Positions 4,473-53,586 of a DNA stretch of 64,000 nt are shown here, piece by piece. Position 1 is the first letter of the stretch. Each line of letters begins with the position of its first letter. The translations under genes and the position numbers were made by a program. The stretch spans positions 16,616,001 through 16,680,000 of the forward strand of contig OZ116707.1 of assembly GCA_964199315.1 (NCBI GenBank), given 5' to 3'. The stretch comes from Orbicella franksi. Its lineage: Eukaryota. The notes under the pieces were generated by a model, which saw only the letters and a program-made list of their open reading frames with translations, ran no database searches and was not told where the DNA came from.

Positions 4473-4506
<34 letters not shown>

Positions 4507-4545
4507 GATACCGGTGCGATGCTCTACCAACTGAGCTATGAAGCC
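4473..4545 (-). pseudogene. tRNA-like head of repeat unit (pseudo-tRNA, GGT at anticodon position)
   Basis: Reverse complement of the 4785-4857 cloverleaf, with A box, B box and a downstream T-run. Confidence 0.8.
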
Positions 4546-4784
4546 ACACATTGGGAGCGAGGTCAATTAATTGAGTTCATATCTTCCCGTGAGTGAAATG
4601 ATGTGAAGTATATATGAAATAATTCATATTTGAACTGAACTTAAATTGGAAAATTTACTGCGATGATCATACTTCACTTTCATCTACTACCGCAGTTCAA
4701 ATATGAATTATTTCATATATACTTCACATCATTTCACTCACGGGAAGATATGAACTCAATTAATTGACCTCGCTCCCAATGTGT

Positions 4785-4823
4785 GGCTTCATAGCTCAGT
4801 TGGTAGAGCATCGCACCGGTATC

Positions 4824-4857
<34 letters not shown>
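4785..4857 (+). pseudogene. tRNA-like head of repeat unit (pseudo-tRNA-Thr(GGT)-like)
   Basis: Acceptor stem GGCTTCA/TGAAGCC, D stem GCTC/GAGC, T stem ACGGG/CCCGT with TTCGAAT loop. The anticodon arm is imperfect (A31-C39 mismatch, C at position 33). A T7 run follows. Confidence 0.8.
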
Positions 4858-5033
4858 TGATTTTTTTCAGGCTTCTTCTTTCCAGTTGCTTAAATTGGAA
4901 AATTTACTGCGATGATCATACTTCACTTTCATCTACTACCGCAGTTCAAATATGAATTATTTCATATATACTTCACATCATTTCACTCACGGGAAGATAT
5001 GAACTCAATTAATTGACCTCGCTCCCAATGTGT

Positions 5034-5072
5034 GGCTTCATAACTCAGTTGGTAGAGCATCGCACCGGTATC

Positions 5073-5106
<34 letters not shown>
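5034..5106 (+). pseudogene. tRNA-like head of repeat unit, D-stem/A-box mutated
   Basis: Same as 4785-4857 except TAACTCAG replaces TAGCTCAG. Confidence 0.75.
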
Positions 5107-5854: not shown

Positions 5855-21713
<15,859 letters not shown>

Positions 21714-46836: not shown

Positions 46837-47086
46837 AAGTGAAGAATGATCATTGCAGTAAATTTTCCAATTTAAGCAATCGGAAAGAAGCCTGAAAAAA
46901 TCAGGGCTTCAGCGGGATTTGAACCCGTGATTTCCCCGAATACCAGTGCGATGGTCTACCAACTGAGCTATGAAGCCACTCATTGTCTCCCTCTTCACTT
47001 TCATCAACAACTGCAGTTCAAATGTGAATTATTTCATATATACTCAACATCATTTCACTCCTCATGGGAAGATATGAACTCAATTA
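46837..47086. mobile_element. Diverged copy of the same tRNA-derived repeat as 4354-5181
   Basis: Minus-strand tRNA-like head (about 46905-46977) followed by an inverted fragment (CACTTTCATC...GGGAAGATATGAACTCAATTA). Confidence 0.85.
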
Positions 47087-47711: not shown

Positions 47712-48137
47712 CAGCATATTTTTTTCCACTGGATATACCTTGCGTGTCCCTGAAAGGTAGGGCAAGAGAGTTGTGTGTATATACTGTGTGTTACACAGTT
47801 GGGTCACCCTAACTTCAAGGCAAGTGATTTTACACCCCATAACAACAATGCAATATTTCTTACATTGTACTGCTGTTTGTAAAGAAACATGGAAATGCTT
47901 TCTTGCTTCAGGAGGCTTAAGGTGGCCCTTTGTAGCACTGGGTGTTTATTGACTACAGTATAAGGTTGGCTCTTTGCAGCCATTACAGGCCATGTGGGCA
48001 AACCCTGAACAATGACTCCCACATCATGACCGTGACTAACCTTGTCTCTGGATATGTTATTCGCACAAGTGCTAATTAACAGGAAGTAAACTTACAAACA
48101 CATAAGGGTAAAACAGAACATTGTTGAAACATGCCAT

Positions 48138-48160
48138 TTTATTTCAAACAATATTTTAAT
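48138..48160 (-). terminator. Poly(A) signals of the SNF gene (ATTAAA 48160-48155, AATAAA 48143-48138)
   Basis: Both hexamers are on the minus strand, followed by a GT-rich tract (GTGTTTGTAAGTTT, about 48100-48087). Confidence 0.65.
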
Positions 48161-48240
48161 ATGGTTTGTTATTGAACATCGCTTCTACCAGGCCTATGGA
48201 TAGATGGTAAATTTTGTGAGTGTAGTATCATTGATAAGCC

Positions 48241-48583
48241 CCAGCCATGTGCAATGCCGGAACAAAAGATCATGTTTTGTCACTTCAGCTCATGTGCAAT
48301 GCTAACAGTGTATCAGCTCAATAAACTACAAGTAATTTAAGTTCCAAACATTCATCAAAAAAATAACACAGCTTTGTGCAATGCTGCAATCAAAGAGAAG
48401 TTTAACTTGCAGCTAGATGATGCTACAGTGGAGAAAATGAAACCGTTCATGTTACAATATGGCAGCCTTAATGTGCAATGCTGCGGTCAGATCAAACTAA
48501 TGCTTAAAATGCAGCCAAGTGCAATGCTGCAATCAGTATGTGTTATCTAAATAATTATATCGACAGCTCTGTGCAATGCCACC
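48241..48583 (-). promoter_or_regulatory. Array of six U1 snRNA stem-loop-II-mimic hairpins (AUUGCAC loops) in the SNF/U1A 3' UTR
   Basis: GCATTGCAC occurs six times on the minus strand (+ strand GTGCAAT starts at 48249, 48294, 48376, 48473, 48519, 48571). Each sits in a 5-6-bp stem closed by C-G, with a loop of 10, 11, 10, 13, 10 and 10 nt respectively. Confidence 0.85.
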
Positions 48584-49017
48584 AATGATAAAACGAAAAT
48601 TCTTGTCCATAAAAATCAAGGATCTTCACCATTTTGAAATAAGACTGGCCCTGCTTTTATACCTCACCATCAAAATTAAAATTCTTTCTTCAGTTTTTTT
48701 GTGGTTATAAAATTTCTTTCAAATTAATCAGAATAAACAATTCAAAAACACACATCCTGTTATTGTGTGTGACATGATATACTCCTGTTACTATACTTAT
48801 TTTGGATTGAAAAAGAAACTGGTATCAAATTGATAAAGAATGACACTAAAGTTAATTTTAAAATGTTGCCTGTGGAACTAGTCTGTCACCAAAAAGCAAA
48901 CAGATCAAATGACTAACAATGGTGGGCTCCTGTTGATGGTGCAAGCATGTTGATGGTAACATCCTCTAATTGACTTGCATGGAAATAACTATTGATAACA
49001 GTGGTGCCCAGAGCAGA

Positions 49018-52000
49018 TCACTTCTTAGCGTAGGAGATTTTCATGGCCCGTGATGGAGTAATACGGAATCCCTGCAGAGCTTCTTTGGCTGTTCCTGACT
49101 GTACTTCATTTTCAAACTCCACAAAAGCAATGTCTGATCGGCCTGGAACCAAACGAACCTCTTTGAATCCAGGAAATCTGTAGCAAGAAATTGCAAAGTA
49201 CAAAGAAAGAAACAAAACAGCAAAACAATGTCACTTAAATCACAAAGTTGTCAACTGAATTTTAAACAAAAAACAAAGAGTATGAGATGACAACAAAGAG
49301 GATTCTTTGCAAAGACATTTCAACTAAAAGGGGCAAGTGCCATGATATGTTAACTCTCAAAACTGTTCTGCATGGTTTTTGATGGGTAACCAAAATTGGA
49401 AACTAATGCAACATTGTCTAGAAGAAACTTGTACATCTACAACATGATAAAGCTTTCTTTCCTCCCAATTAAACTGCCCTAGAGATACATGGAAACGCAG
49501 CAAATATATGAACACTGTTAAGCATTAAGATTGGCTTGGCGAGAAAATTCAATATGAAACAAAATAAAAAATGGACGGGAAAATTTTGCACGCATTTATT
49601 AAGCAGAAAATCCTTAATCCAGGAATGGTACTGGTTGAATAACATAGACAACATCAACTCAGTTGTCTCCTCTGGTAGGTTAGTCAAGAACAAGATATTG
49701 TTGGGCTGCTCAGGTAACACCACGGCTGGCTGTACTGGAGTTGGGATGACTGTGGAACCAGAAAATGACAGACACATTAATTAGGCTAAATGTCATTTTA
49801 TCATTCAAAATAGGAAATATAAAAAGTAGCAAAAAGTTCCACTTCAAAAATAAAAATAACACCTCTTCACCAAAAACAATTATTGATTTAGCATGAAGGA
49901 CAGGTTAAAGTTGAAAACATGAATATTCCATTACCATTTGGTGCAATTGGTGCAGCAACAGGCTGAGCAACTGCAGCAGGAACAGGCTGGGCAGCTGCTT
50001 GTCGTTTGGCTGGTTTAACTGCATGGGCCAAACAAAATAGGTTAGCACAGGAATGAGTACTACAATGTAAATCAAGCTCCACAACATTTTTTTTTTACAT
50101 GTTACAATAACAATACTAAAATGAAAGTTCCTCCATCACACTCGTGTGTACCAAAAGGCAAACTCCATTTGATTTTAAGCTGTCCCTCTTTGAATTAGAA
50201 TAATGCTTTCAATCTGTCTATAATATATTTGCAGTTTTTATTTGTATTTAGCATTGTGCACATTAATCTCATTGCATGATATAAAAGCCTACAAATTTCG
50301 GAAAAAGAATGACATGGAATCCCAATAATATTCATTCACCACATTGTCCCTCCATTCCTGGTGTACAGAGCATGAATGGATAATGATAGTGACACTGTAC
50401 ATGTAAAAACAGAAAAAAAACATTGAACAGAATTTACCACACAACTATAGAAACCAATACACTTGTGTGAAAATTTTTCCATTAAAAATAAATTCTGAAA
50501 TCTTATACAGAAGCAAAACTATGTTATTGCGAGGTCAAAGACATCAAGGAACAAAAGTGATGATCAGTGTTCATTGCAGCATTACCTTGTTCTGGAGCTT
50601 TTCTCTTCTCTTTGGGTTTCTTCTCTCTCTGAACATATGTTCCTTCCTTTTTCGCTACAGCATCAGACTTGCTCTTAGCATATTGTATTCTCTAACACAT
50701 GCAGTGAGAGGAAAAGTGATGTAAAAACTTCACAGCATCAGAACAACAAGCTTAACGTCTAGTGAGGGCACTTTTGACAAAACTGTTGTCCGTGATAGAC
50801 ATTTCAGTGAACTGAGGGGAAGTAATCTTCAGGGTCAAGTCATTTTCAAAGTCACTTGACTCTGAAGATGACTCCCGCTCAGGTTGCCAAAATGTCATTC
50901 ACCAACAAGAGTTCTTTTGAGAACTACTGTACCCTAACCTGCATAATCACGCTAGCTGAACAACTGGATACTCCTGGGTTCAAACCATTTACAGCATCAC
51001 TACATGGCAATAATATGGTCTCAGAATGCCTTCATGTTTCTTTACATGACAGAATTATGTAGAAAACCAGGACCTTGAAACAAGTGCAATTTAATGCACT
51101 GATTTTAAAATCTTTCCAGCACTACTCCAGGACAAACCTCAATAGCTTTCTAACTTGTTACAGGACGAAACCCTTACAAATTCAATTTACTTCCTTCAAA
51201 CTTAGCAAAAAATGTCCTCTATGCAAATTGACACCTTGTAGCTAAAAATAGTGCTGTACAAGAAGGACTTGTTCTCTTAATACTACCAAACAAGCATGTT
51301 TTCAAATACTCACAAACAACCTCTGATACATCCTCACTCAAGCCAAATTATACTTTGGAAAATAATATCTTAGTAACTAGGATCCATGAAGATCATTCAA
51401 CATAACAAAAAAATAATTTTTCTCTGTTTTCAAACAAAAGAGGATTCATTAGCATACTAACAACATCGCTGACCATAGGTTAAATATTCATTGCCCCTGA
51501 TTGCTGAATAACAGATGTCATCAGAATAAACTTAACAACACAGTAAAGACTCTCAATAATTTGACAGCCAGAATATTTAATCAAACTGCTAAAAAAAACT
51601 TTGGCAAAGCTCTCAAATTAAAAAAGTTTTCCTACAGATGTAAATTAATGCACTCAAGTTTTTAACAGGAAGTTTATCCAGCTGTTTTTCATGATCTTCA
51701 TTTCAAGTTATCAGACTTCAAACAGTAGATCTGCTGCAATATTGACAAGTATTTTTTAATCAAACCATGCCAACAATATTGACTGCTTGTAGTGAAATGA
51801 AATATTCGGCCCTTAATAAACCATCTAGAAGAAAAATAATTATATTTATTTATCTTTAGGATCTGCCAAAATAATATTCTTGTAGAAACTTTTCCTGAAC
51901 TTAATTATCCATGCATAACATGCACACTAAAAACTATGGTCATTAAAAAAAGATTATACAGGGATACAAAGACTTTTCAAACCATTGATGTTTGCAGAGA

Positions 52001-53586
52001 GCATCAACTCGAAATTAATCATTTTCTACCAGTCAGCATTCTCAGCAAGCATAATCATACCTCCAAAAACAATTTTTTGGTCACAAACCACTGTATGATA
52101 CATACCACTCAAGCTGTAGGGTCGGTTCATTCTACACTGTATAAGCAAAGAACTTACCATTGGCTTGTCATAAAACGGGAATCCTTGCATTGAGCGCAGT
52201 GCATTTGTGGCGCTCGTTAAGTCTCTAAACACTACAAACGCCTGACCTCTCATTTTGAGGGTCTTAAGTGCAACAATGTCTAAAATGGGTCCAAACTGTG
52301 AAAATATGGCATACAGTGACTTCTTCAATTCTGCAAACATCAAAAGAAAATGTGTTATACATGTACACTGTAAATTAGTAGGTAACATAATGTTTAGAAA
52401 CCCTTCACTTATATTCGTGTGTAAGCATGTAAGCACGAACACCTCATGAACACAAAAAAACTGATCTGACGTTTGGCAGAACAATTCCTAAAGGTTTCAA
52501 TTTCAAAGTACAACATAGTTGGTATCATTTCATAATTTGAGTTGTGAAAGTGTTTTCAGTAAGTATGGATTCAACTTCAAATCAGGGGTTCTCTCAACAA
52601 AGGAAGCTTCTTTTAAGCTTCCTCTGTGCTTGTATATGAAAACATTATTTTCACTGACAACTTCATGAAACGATACCAAGTGCATTGTACATGTACTTTG
52701 GGCAAGAAAGTTAGCATTACAGCCTGCCAAACTTCAGATAACTGATGATGAGTCACCCAACGAAATCATAGTTTTAATGCGAGGTGTTCACACTGTGAAG
52801 CAAATAACATTGTTGAAGCAGTTCAAGGTCTGAAATTACCAGCAGATGATCATCAACAGGCATGGATCCAAACCGGTTTCCACCGTTTTACGGAAATTGG
52901 TCAGAAACCCCCTAAAAAATCCAGAGCATTTCCTAAGCGAGCATGGCCCTGGATCCCTCTAAAAGGCACTCGTTGTTTCGGAAATCAGTCACCATTTATC
53001 CTAGACCCGCACCTAATCAATGTGGCTACACTTCAGTGTGTGTTTTCCTGTTTCAGTGTCAACTGACAACTGAAGAATTCAGTTGCCACTGTACTTGAAG
53101 GCTGCCTCTGCATAACATAGCTAATTTGGCCCGCGTTATAGTATGCTACAGCCTGCAGTAATACACGTAAAAATGTTATAAGGCATTTTGAAGTAAGCTT
53201 ACATATAGGATGGGTGAATTTCCTACGAAACTCTGTATTTCACAGCAGTGAGAGCTCATTTAAACATGGTAAAGGATTCAAGACGAGCTCCGAGTTTGTA
53301 CCTATCAGTAAAAGACTCGTAGCTCCACCTTTAACTAACGCGAGGCTGCGATCTACAGCTCTATATCAAAACAGCAATGCAACGCTTGACGCGCACGTGT
53401 ATTTCCATTCCACAACACTTAACCACAAAACGTTTCAAACCGCATTCGTTGCGTTGTGAACGGAAGACATCTCGCTGTTTATCGCTTGACTAGTATCAAT
53501 TGCGACTCTTAATAACACTCACCATCCTTCTTGACTTTCTCGTTGAGGTTGTTGATGTAGATGGTTTGGTTCGGTGGATTTTCCAT
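49018..53586 (-). CDS. SNF: U1A/U2B''/SNF-family snRNP protein (two RRMs), 6 exons, 234 aa
   Basis: Exons: 53586-53523, 52330-52158, 50691-50586, 50018-49935, 49749-49632, 49177-49018; total 705 nt. RRM1 [52 protein letters not shown]...FYDKPMRIQYAK; RRM2 [46 protein letters not shown]...KISYAKK. Confidence 0.97.
50761..50992. mobile_element. Penelope-like element remnant: inverted pair of decayed hammerhead-containing repeats in SNF intron 2
   Basis: Arms at about 50761-50840 and 50854-50935 are reverse complements. Each has a CTGAAGA box; the right arm lost GAAA and the left arm lost stem II. Confidence 0.65.
52857..53015. mobile_element. Degenerate hAT-like MITE in SNF intron 1
   Basis: CAGGCATGGATCC at the left end and ATCCTAGACCCGCACCT at the right end, with an internal GAGCATGGCCCTGGATCCC motif. 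Confidence 0.45.

Follow-up and report, generated by a model that had tools for sequence, protein, structure and literature searches.

The window analysed here, a 64 kb stretch of the genome of the coral Orbicella franksi, carries on its minus strand a gene of the SNF/U1A/U2B'' family, and the 3' untranslated region (UTR) of this gene contains an array of six short hairpins of the type found in stem-loop II (SLII) of U1 snRNA. The gene and the elements of its 3' end are the following, with coordinates counted from the first letter of the window.

49018..53586, minus strand: coding part of the SNF/U1A/U2B'' gene, six exons with an open 705 nt coding sequence for 234 aa and two RRMs
53586-53523, 52330-52158, 50691-50586, 50018-49935, 49749-49632 and 49177-49018, minus strand: the six exons, with introns that are all GT-AG
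48121..49017, minus strand: 3' UTR of the SNF mRNA, about 897 nt, seen in RNA contigs of eight runs and continuous with the coding sequence
48160-48155 (ATTAAA) and 48143-48138 (AATAAA), minus strand: poly(A) signals, 79 and 96 nt after the last hairpin (H6)
48235-48220 and 48194-48178, minus strand: two conserved blocks between H6 and the poly(A) signal that are not hairpins of this type, kept in Porites and Acropora according to a reading of the alignment by eye, the block at 48194-48178 having been offset by the aligner in the coral alignment

The predicted protein gave two matches to Pfam RRM_1, shares 99% identity with 'U1 small nuclear ribonucleoprotein A-like' of Orbicella faveolata, and has 3804 homologues; its best relatives with a solved structure are human U1A and U2B'' (full-length alignment E values of 1.6e-92 and 1.4e-88, respectively). 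It has the two RRMs, the family-specific RRM1 and the C-terminal RRM2 ending in ...AKK that characterize the SNF/U1A/U2B'' family. Over the aligned RRM1 its identity to human U1A is about 85%, and it has the same residues as the human protein at Y13, N15, N16, E19, R52, Q54 and F56, positions known to contact RNA. The domains, the alignments and the RRM1 match to human U1A therefore confirm that the host gene of the array is an SNF/U1A/U2B'' orthologue, as the initial annotation had proposed. The segment that follows RRM1 in human U1A is implicated in the inhibition of poly(A) polymerase; the corresponding coral segment is basic like the human one, is only partly similar to it, and is equally close to U2B''. 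This basic segment is more diverged in molluscs and in a brachiopod, though the hairpins are present there. The window also holds four tRNA genes (Rfam), three of them clustered at 4473-5106 and including an identical-scoring inverted pair, while the fourth (46904-46977) lies about 1.1 kb past the SNF poly(A) site on the same strand.

Evidence for the transcript came from Logan contigs of eight RNA runs belonging to several studies. These contigs cover positions 48121-49177 without a break and join the array to spliced coding sequence; they contain the exon 5-6 join at 49177 and, as they run at this position into exon 5, they are spliced. Loose poly(A) ends were found at about 48121 in two runs (X1, X13), placing cleavage at about 48121-48123, 17-20 nt past AATAAA. 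Since the spliced contigs cover the array and the poly(A) ends map to about 48121, downstream of it, the array is part of the mature polyadenylated mRNA, and no poly(A) site upstream of 48583, a position at which the message could have ended before the array, was seen. The array starts 435 nt after the stop codon (49020-49018), as first described, and the distances to ATTAAA and AATAAA listed above agree approximately with the earlier estimate. In the contigs of the eight runs neither an alternative join nor an upstream poly(A) end was detected in the 3' UTR. Contig depth steps down three- to four-fold within the UTR, upstream of or inside the array, in the poly(A) RNA runs X3 and X9 (from about 250 to 61 and from 183 to 64, respectively) and is flat in three other runs. 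A shorter isoform was considered as the source of this step and judged improbable, the break points being different (48648 vs 48541-48554), lying at polymorphic sites and being accompanied by no poly(A) end or join. Because the break points differ between runs and coincide with polymorphic sites, the depth step (48541-48648) probably reflects the splitting of alleles by the assembler, and a shorter isoform is not favoured.

Recognition of SLII by U1A depends on the heptamer AUUGCAC on the loop's 5' side, on closure of the loop by a C-G pair and on the presence of at least three further loop bases. The six hairpins of the array lie on the minus strand at the coordinates given in the initial annotation and span 48238-48586. 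They are listed below in mRNA order together with their scores against a covariance model (R1) that is described further on.

48559..48586, minus strand: H1, stem of 9 bp with some G-U pairs, loop AUUGCAC+AGA (10 nt) closed by C-G; R1 26.3 bits
48510..48531, minus strand: H2, 6 bp stem, loop AUUGCAC+UUG (10 nt); R1 31.2 bits
48462..48484, minus strand: H3, 5 bp stem, loop AUUGCAC+AUUAAG (13 nt); R1 17.6 bits, outside the R1 training set
48367..48388, minus strand: H4, 5-6 bp stem, loop AUUGCAC+AAA (10 nt); R1 31.8 bits, orthologous copies in Porites and Acropora
48282..48309, minus strand: H5, 5 bp stem plus 3 pairs across one bulged G, loop AUUGCAC+AUGA (11 nt); R1 17.9 bits, outside the R1 training set, orthologous copies in Porites and Acropora
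48238..48263, minus strand: H6, 8 bp stem, loop AUUGCAC+AUG (10 nt); R1 30.8 bits, stem shared with Porites

When each copy was folded alone, all six placed AUUGCAC at the 5' side of the loop and closed the loop with a C-G pair, on stems of 5-9 bp. Four of the six loops are 10 nt long, as had been noted (10, 10, 13, 10, 11 and 10 nt for H1 to H6), and all six leave at least three extra loop bases free, as in the loop of about 10 nt of an SLII-type site, so that each unit shows every sequence and structural feature of such a site. The element GCAUUGCAC occurs six times in the 64 kb window, always on the minus strand within 48238-48586 and nowhere else. Likewise, the six copies of GCATTGCAC in the window all lie on the minus strand between 48249 and 48579, which bears out the earlier statement that no further copy of this 9-mer is present; dinucleotide shuffles predicted 0.52 copies, and in none of 100 shuffles were six or more reached. 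The bare heptamer is only mildly enriched over the whole window (20 vs 12 expected), indicating that the signal resides in the local cluster and in the context of the heptamers. The folding energies of the single hairpins are weak (-4.3 to -10.8 kcal/mol), and H6, the most stable at -10.8 kcal/mol, is alone in standing above its shuffles. In a global fold of a 391 nt region H2 and H6 were retained and the other four hairpins were lost, with an overall stability equal to that of shuffled sequences (z = 0.51). The case for structure consequently rests on comparative evidence. No tandem repeat was found over the array, and neither the polyadenylation inhibition element (PIE) nor any other family was assigned to it when the window and ten orthologous loci were scanned with Rfam.

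The specificity of the association with SNF genes was assessed with a count of heptamers that involved no selection for stems, covering the window and 12 orthologous loci. ATTGCAC occurred 35 times in 26 kb of sense 3' flank, as opposed to 41 times in the 392 kb outside these flanks (Poisson P about 1e-26). The loop could be closed by a C-G pair for 35 of the 35 heptamers in the sense flanks vs 8 of the 41 elsewhere, and 25 of the 35 vs none of the 41 have an uninterrupted stem of at least 4 bp. A similar picture was obtained with the covariance model R1, trained on twenty hairpins with 10-nt loops, which was run over both strands of 235 kb and returned 33 matches at E<0.1; all of these are in sense orientation downstream of SNF stop codons, eight of them lie outside the training set, and within the 64 kb window none occurs beyond the array. 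In an environmental set of 80 SNF-like contigs from metagenomes and metatranscriptomes, R1 gave 15 matches at E<0.1, all of which follow the coding region on the coding strand, distributed over 10 contigs (11 if one match at E = 0.11 is counted). The SNF-like proteins of these contigs are 60-75% identical to the coral protein over the best segment, and 65-86% to their nearest named proteins. Two environmental transcripts (L018:829-1486 and L021:814-1571) carry three to four hairpins after an SNF-like coding region. One environmental contig contains the loop variants AUUGCAG and AUUGCAU beside AUUGCAC, the first of which is the form found in stem-loop IV of U2 snRNA, and a mixture of AUUGCAG and AUUGCAC would agree with the recognition of both snRNA loops by one SNF protein.

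In the comparative set, made up of orthologous loci or transcripts of other animals in which the region downstream of the stop codon was inspected, hairpins of a shared type were present in corals, as a check proposed in the initial annotation had called for, and well beyond them. In these hairpins AUUGCAC occupies the 5' side of a loop of 10-11 nt that is closed by a C-G pair, and the stem sequences differ between taxa. Positions are counted from the stop codon.

Acropora: four hairpins and a degenerate fifth, from about +850
Porites lutea: four hairpins, +617 to +1010
Nematostella: one strong and two weaker hairpins, from +19
Exaiptasia: four hairpins, +24 to +538
Trichoplax: one hairpin with an 8-bp stem and one weaker, at +108 and +214
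Pecten maximus (scallop): three hairpins, +407 to +706
Lingula (brachiopod): three hairpins, +173 to +282

Patiria, Strongylocentrotus and the jellyfish Rhopilema have one weaker hairpin each, 1.1-1.7 kb past the stop codon and of putative UTR membership; no such hairpins were found after the SNF stop codon of the octocoral Dendronephthya or the tick Ixodes, either by inspection or with model R1. Their occurrence in a placozoan, a scallop and a brachiopod means that a cnidarian-specific feature, as which the array could at first be taken, is no longer tenable. The single hairpins of the sea star (L010:9395-9425), the sea urchin (L012:9665-9700) and the jellyfish (L008:10680-10712) have nearly the same stem, composed of CAUG, one to three unpaired U and UGC on one side and of GCA and CAUG on the other, with one bulged U in the echinoderms and an internal loop of three unpaired U opposite one in Rhopilema, where a second R1 match lies about 200 nt upstream of the hairpin (10488-10535). 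A Vps26 gene adjoins SNF in Trichoplax (L009), Lingula (L013) and Ixodes (L014). In Lingula and Ixodes it lies upstream in divergent orientation, in Trichoplax downstream in convergent orientation, and the arrangement looks like an old microsynteny. The spacing of the hairpins also shows regularities. The distance from the last hairpin to the first poly(A) signal is 65-116 nt in the window coral, Acropora, Porites, Nematostella, Exaiptasia and Pecten, and in four of these six UTRs no earlier poly(A) signal occurs over 550-1030 nt. Moreover, the hairpins are often closely paired, with 24-58 nt from loop start to loop start.

The pattern of substitutions shows, as far as can be judged from alignments, selection on the heptamer and on pairing. 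The heptamer is unvaried in all 31 aligned hairpins from 11 taxa. As the MAFFT alignment of these 31 hairpins (A1) pushed the gaps arising from loop length to the 3' end, pairs were counted instead on the 20 hairpins with ten-nt loops (A2). Here 90% of the stem cells are paired, as opposed to 23-48% in slid registers, and double changes occur in five of the six pairs, an outcome reached in none of 500 shuffles. Compensatory changes of the kind suggested as a check in the initial annotation are thus present among the orthologous hairpins, the statistic being inflated because the hairpins were chosen partly for having stems; the heptamer count given above, made without selection for stems, is unbiased in this respect. 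The closing pair is C-G in 20 of 20 and the second stem pair G-C in 19 of 20 of these hairpins. A finer comparison is offered by H4, H5 and H6, which are orthologous in the window coral, Porites and Acropora. Among these three genera the heptamer is invariant in 21 of 21 columns and the stems in 27 of 38, while none of the 10 columns of loop bases that follow the heptamer is invariant, and the spacers have 50 invariant columns of 80 with 29 further columns gapped. In the crystal structure of a U1A-hairpin complex attributed to Oubridge and dated 1994, the heptamer and the closing pair are reportedly read and the last three loop bases are said to serve as a spacer. The fast-evolving positions are hence the bases that U1A does not read, which is the pattern expected from this structure. 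Within the coral itself, two polymorphisms in H4 (48368 A>G and 48371 G>A) change a G-U to a G-C pair and a G-C to a G-U pair, respectively, so that pairing is retained, and none of the polymorphisms seen in the RNA contigs falls within any heptamer.

These data bear on two explanations in which SNF has no part. The array might be a by-product, consisting of fragments of a mobile element that bears SLII-like hairpins or of chance duplications without function, but we consider the probability of this to be very low. The spacers are diverged and unrelated to each other, as originally observed, internal repeats are confined to the hairpin cores of 18-28 nt, and there is neither a longer repeated unit nor any other copy in the 64 kb. 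H4-H6 are moreover orthologous in three coral genera, equivalent hairpins occur at the same gene in other phyla, and substitutions follow the heptamer and the pairing. A tandem-repeat or transposon origin is therefore rejected on account of the short cores, the absence of the unit elsewhere in the window and the conservation across phyla, which also rules out a recent insertion; within the window the array does not behave as the dispersed transposon repeat that had been raised as a possible objection, and the cross-phylum conservation agrees with this. Alternatively, the hairpins may be recognized by a different factor, such as a GCAC-binding protein of the RBPMS/MEC-8 type, a loop-specific nuclease or a localization factor. 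Each site does contain GCAC, and RBPMS-family proteins bind repeated GCAC motifs (PMC5311487). However, an invariant whole heptamer, a C-G closing pair and a hairpin context go far beyond the needs of a GCAC binder, and an unrelated factor gives no reason why the elements should be confined to the regions downstream of SNF genes in every sampled taxon. We therefore regard this explanation as very improbable.

In our main reading, to which we assign a probability of roughly 0.6, the hairpins are self-binding sites for RRM1 of SNF that provide negative feedback, most likely via 3'-end processing. RRM1 of the encoded protein would bind the six hairpins, which correspond to the part of SLII recognized by U1A/SNF. 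SNF that is surplus to U1 or U2 snRNPs would then occupy the sites in the pre-mRNA or mRNA that encodes it and lower further production, the likeliest route being that cleavage or polyadenylation is hindered at the signal 80-120 nt downstream, as vertebrate U1A does via the PIE. Self-binding is the economical reading of a situation in which copies of a protein's RNA target are located in its own mRNA, are kept in most of the sampled lineages and are found nowhere else searched. The parts of this proposal differ in strength. The hairpins themselves, their place in the mature mRNA, their conservation with covarying stems and their restriction to SNF genes have been shown. That they are SNF-binding sites under selection appears highly probable. 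We infer the binding from the match to established recognition rules and, more weakly, the negative sign of the effect and its action on 3'-end processing. By analogy with U1A, negative feedback is a reasonably probable outcome, while inhibition of polyadenylation as its mechanism can be put forward only tentatively, the odds being somewhat against it. The spacing of the last hairpin, the lack of an earlier signal and the close pairs point toward a PIE-like feedback on the 3' end, and the close pairs would suit a need for two bound molecules. On the other hand, the array lies several times as far from the signal as the PIE does, some anemone hairpins adjoin the stop codon, and the segment that follows RRM1 resembles U2B'' as much as U1A, all of which speaks against a 3'-end mechanism. 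As the mature mRNA bearing the array was readily assembled in every run, any repression would be partial.

SNF might also bind the hairpins with another effect, namely stabilization or enhancement of the mRNA, its nuclear retention, or the formation of a reservoir that titrates free SNF. When U1 SL2 was placed in the 3' UTR of a reporter in human cells, expression went up, not down, through endogenous U1A, and U1A-bound targets were more often raised than lowered (PMC9136276), so the sign of the feedback cannot be assumed. The array is found on an abundant mature polyadenylated mRNA, some 80 nt or more separate it from the poly(A) signal, and some hairpins of the anemones Nematostella and Exaiptasia occur 19-24 nt past the stop codon, far from the poly(A) signal. 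Against an effect of this kind, positive feedback would give unstable control of a stoichiometric snRNP protein, the spacing from the last hairpin to the first signal stays within narrow limits in six species, and for vertebrate U1A, the only studied homologue, tests gave negative feedback (PMC6884704, PMC5071671). We consider such an effect possible but rather unlikely.

If negative self-regulation by SNF is accepted as the preferred reading, its history can be approached through the distribution of the hairpins. The hairpin-array form of SNF/U1A self-recognition was probably ancestral in animals, judging from the taxa that carry it. Whether it preceded the split of placozoans, cnidarians and bilaterians, with the PIE being a compacted pair of hairpins, the copy number of 1 to 6 acting as a dial for gain, and the tick and the octocoral representing losses, is in our opinion an evenly balanced matter. 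U1A autoregulation via the PIE is a textbook case of an RNA-binding protein that controls its own 3'-end formation. In the literature searched, autoregulation of the U1A type is described for vertebrates only: a full-text search, in which subscription journals were partly covered, yielded the vertebrate PIE alone, with no account of hairpins of this kind in the SNF/U1A genes of invertebrates, and a paper on the evolution of the SNF/U1A family does not deal with the UTR. If the arrays work as proposed, feedback on a core spliceosomal protein would date to early animals and would exist in a second architecture, a modular one built from independent hairpins that vary in copy number and spacing. 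Such arrays would offer a natural valency series, rising from one hairpin in echinoderms through two in Trichoplax and three in scallop and Lingula to four in Acropora, Porites and Exaiptasia and six here, for the study of feedback gain, of spacing effects and of the origin of the PIE. In addition, they supply a sequence rule for annotating the 3' UTRs of SNF/U1A genes, and the laboratory animals Nematostella and Exaiptasia are testable systems.

Among the closest known systems is SLII of U1 snRNA itself, the natural site of U1A/SNF RRM1. It too is a terminal hairpin in which AUUGCAC occupies the 5' side of a loop of about 10 nt, the loop is closed by a C-G pair and its last three bases may vary. 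In contrast to SLII, the hairpins described here are located in an mRNA, their second stem pair is nearly always G-C (19 of 20), and loops of 11 and 13 nt occur. The U1A sites of the IgM secretory site and of SMN are known as relaxed non-hairpin motifs in other genes, whereas the coral sites are full-consensus hairpins in the protein's own gene. As in the coral, several U1A sites are present there near a poly(A) signal, where they modulate 3'-end processing without U1 snRNP (PMC9136276). A parallel in regulatory logic is provided by the cross-regulation of U1C and U1-70K (PMC3798272) and by L10a (PMC4937301), in which excess protein is sensed via a copy of its RNA target in its own transcript. 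These systems act via alternative splicing and NMD, whereas the terminal exon holds the coral sites and the eight runs showed no alternative join.

A further comparison is with the PIE (Rfam RF00460), through which two cooperatively bound U1A molecules inhibit poly(A) polymerase (Boelens 1993, Gunderson 1994/1997 and Varani 2000, as reviewed in PMC6884704 and PMC5071671). Both elements are situated in the 3' UTR of orthologous genes, in the transcript and upstream of the poly(A) signal, both contain more than one SLII heptamer with a C-G closing pair, and in both the presumed binder is the gene's own product. A U1 snRNP co-element has been reported beside the human PIE; no conserved co-element of this kind (5' splice site-like) was found in the coral UTRs, and scattered matches at 8-9 of 11 positions occurred elsewhere. 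The PIE is one 47-nt structure whose two heptamers occupy internal loops on opposite strands, and it is placed just upstream of the signal (PMC5071671), whereas the coral array comprises six independent hairpins (one to five elsewhere) that extend over 350 nt and stop about 80 nt short of the signal. All of its heptamers are in terminal loops, and none of them forms the pair of asymmetric internal loops of a single stem that defines the PIE. Consistent with this, the Rfam PIE model scored 15.7 bits in the window against a threshold of 50 and gave no match in the ten orthologous loci. The distance from hairpin to signal, 79 and 96 nt here and 65-116 nt in the five other species, keeps to a conserved range but is several times that of the PIE (PMC5071671). 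Furthermore, the PIE mechanism has been tested experimentally, whereas that of the coral array is proposed by analogy. The initial annotation had suggested an architecture that is different from the PIE and possibly independent of it. The first part is upheld by the terminal loops and by the absence of a match to RF00460, but the second is not, and since the hairpins are widespread in animals, common descent with the PIE is likelier than an independent origin.
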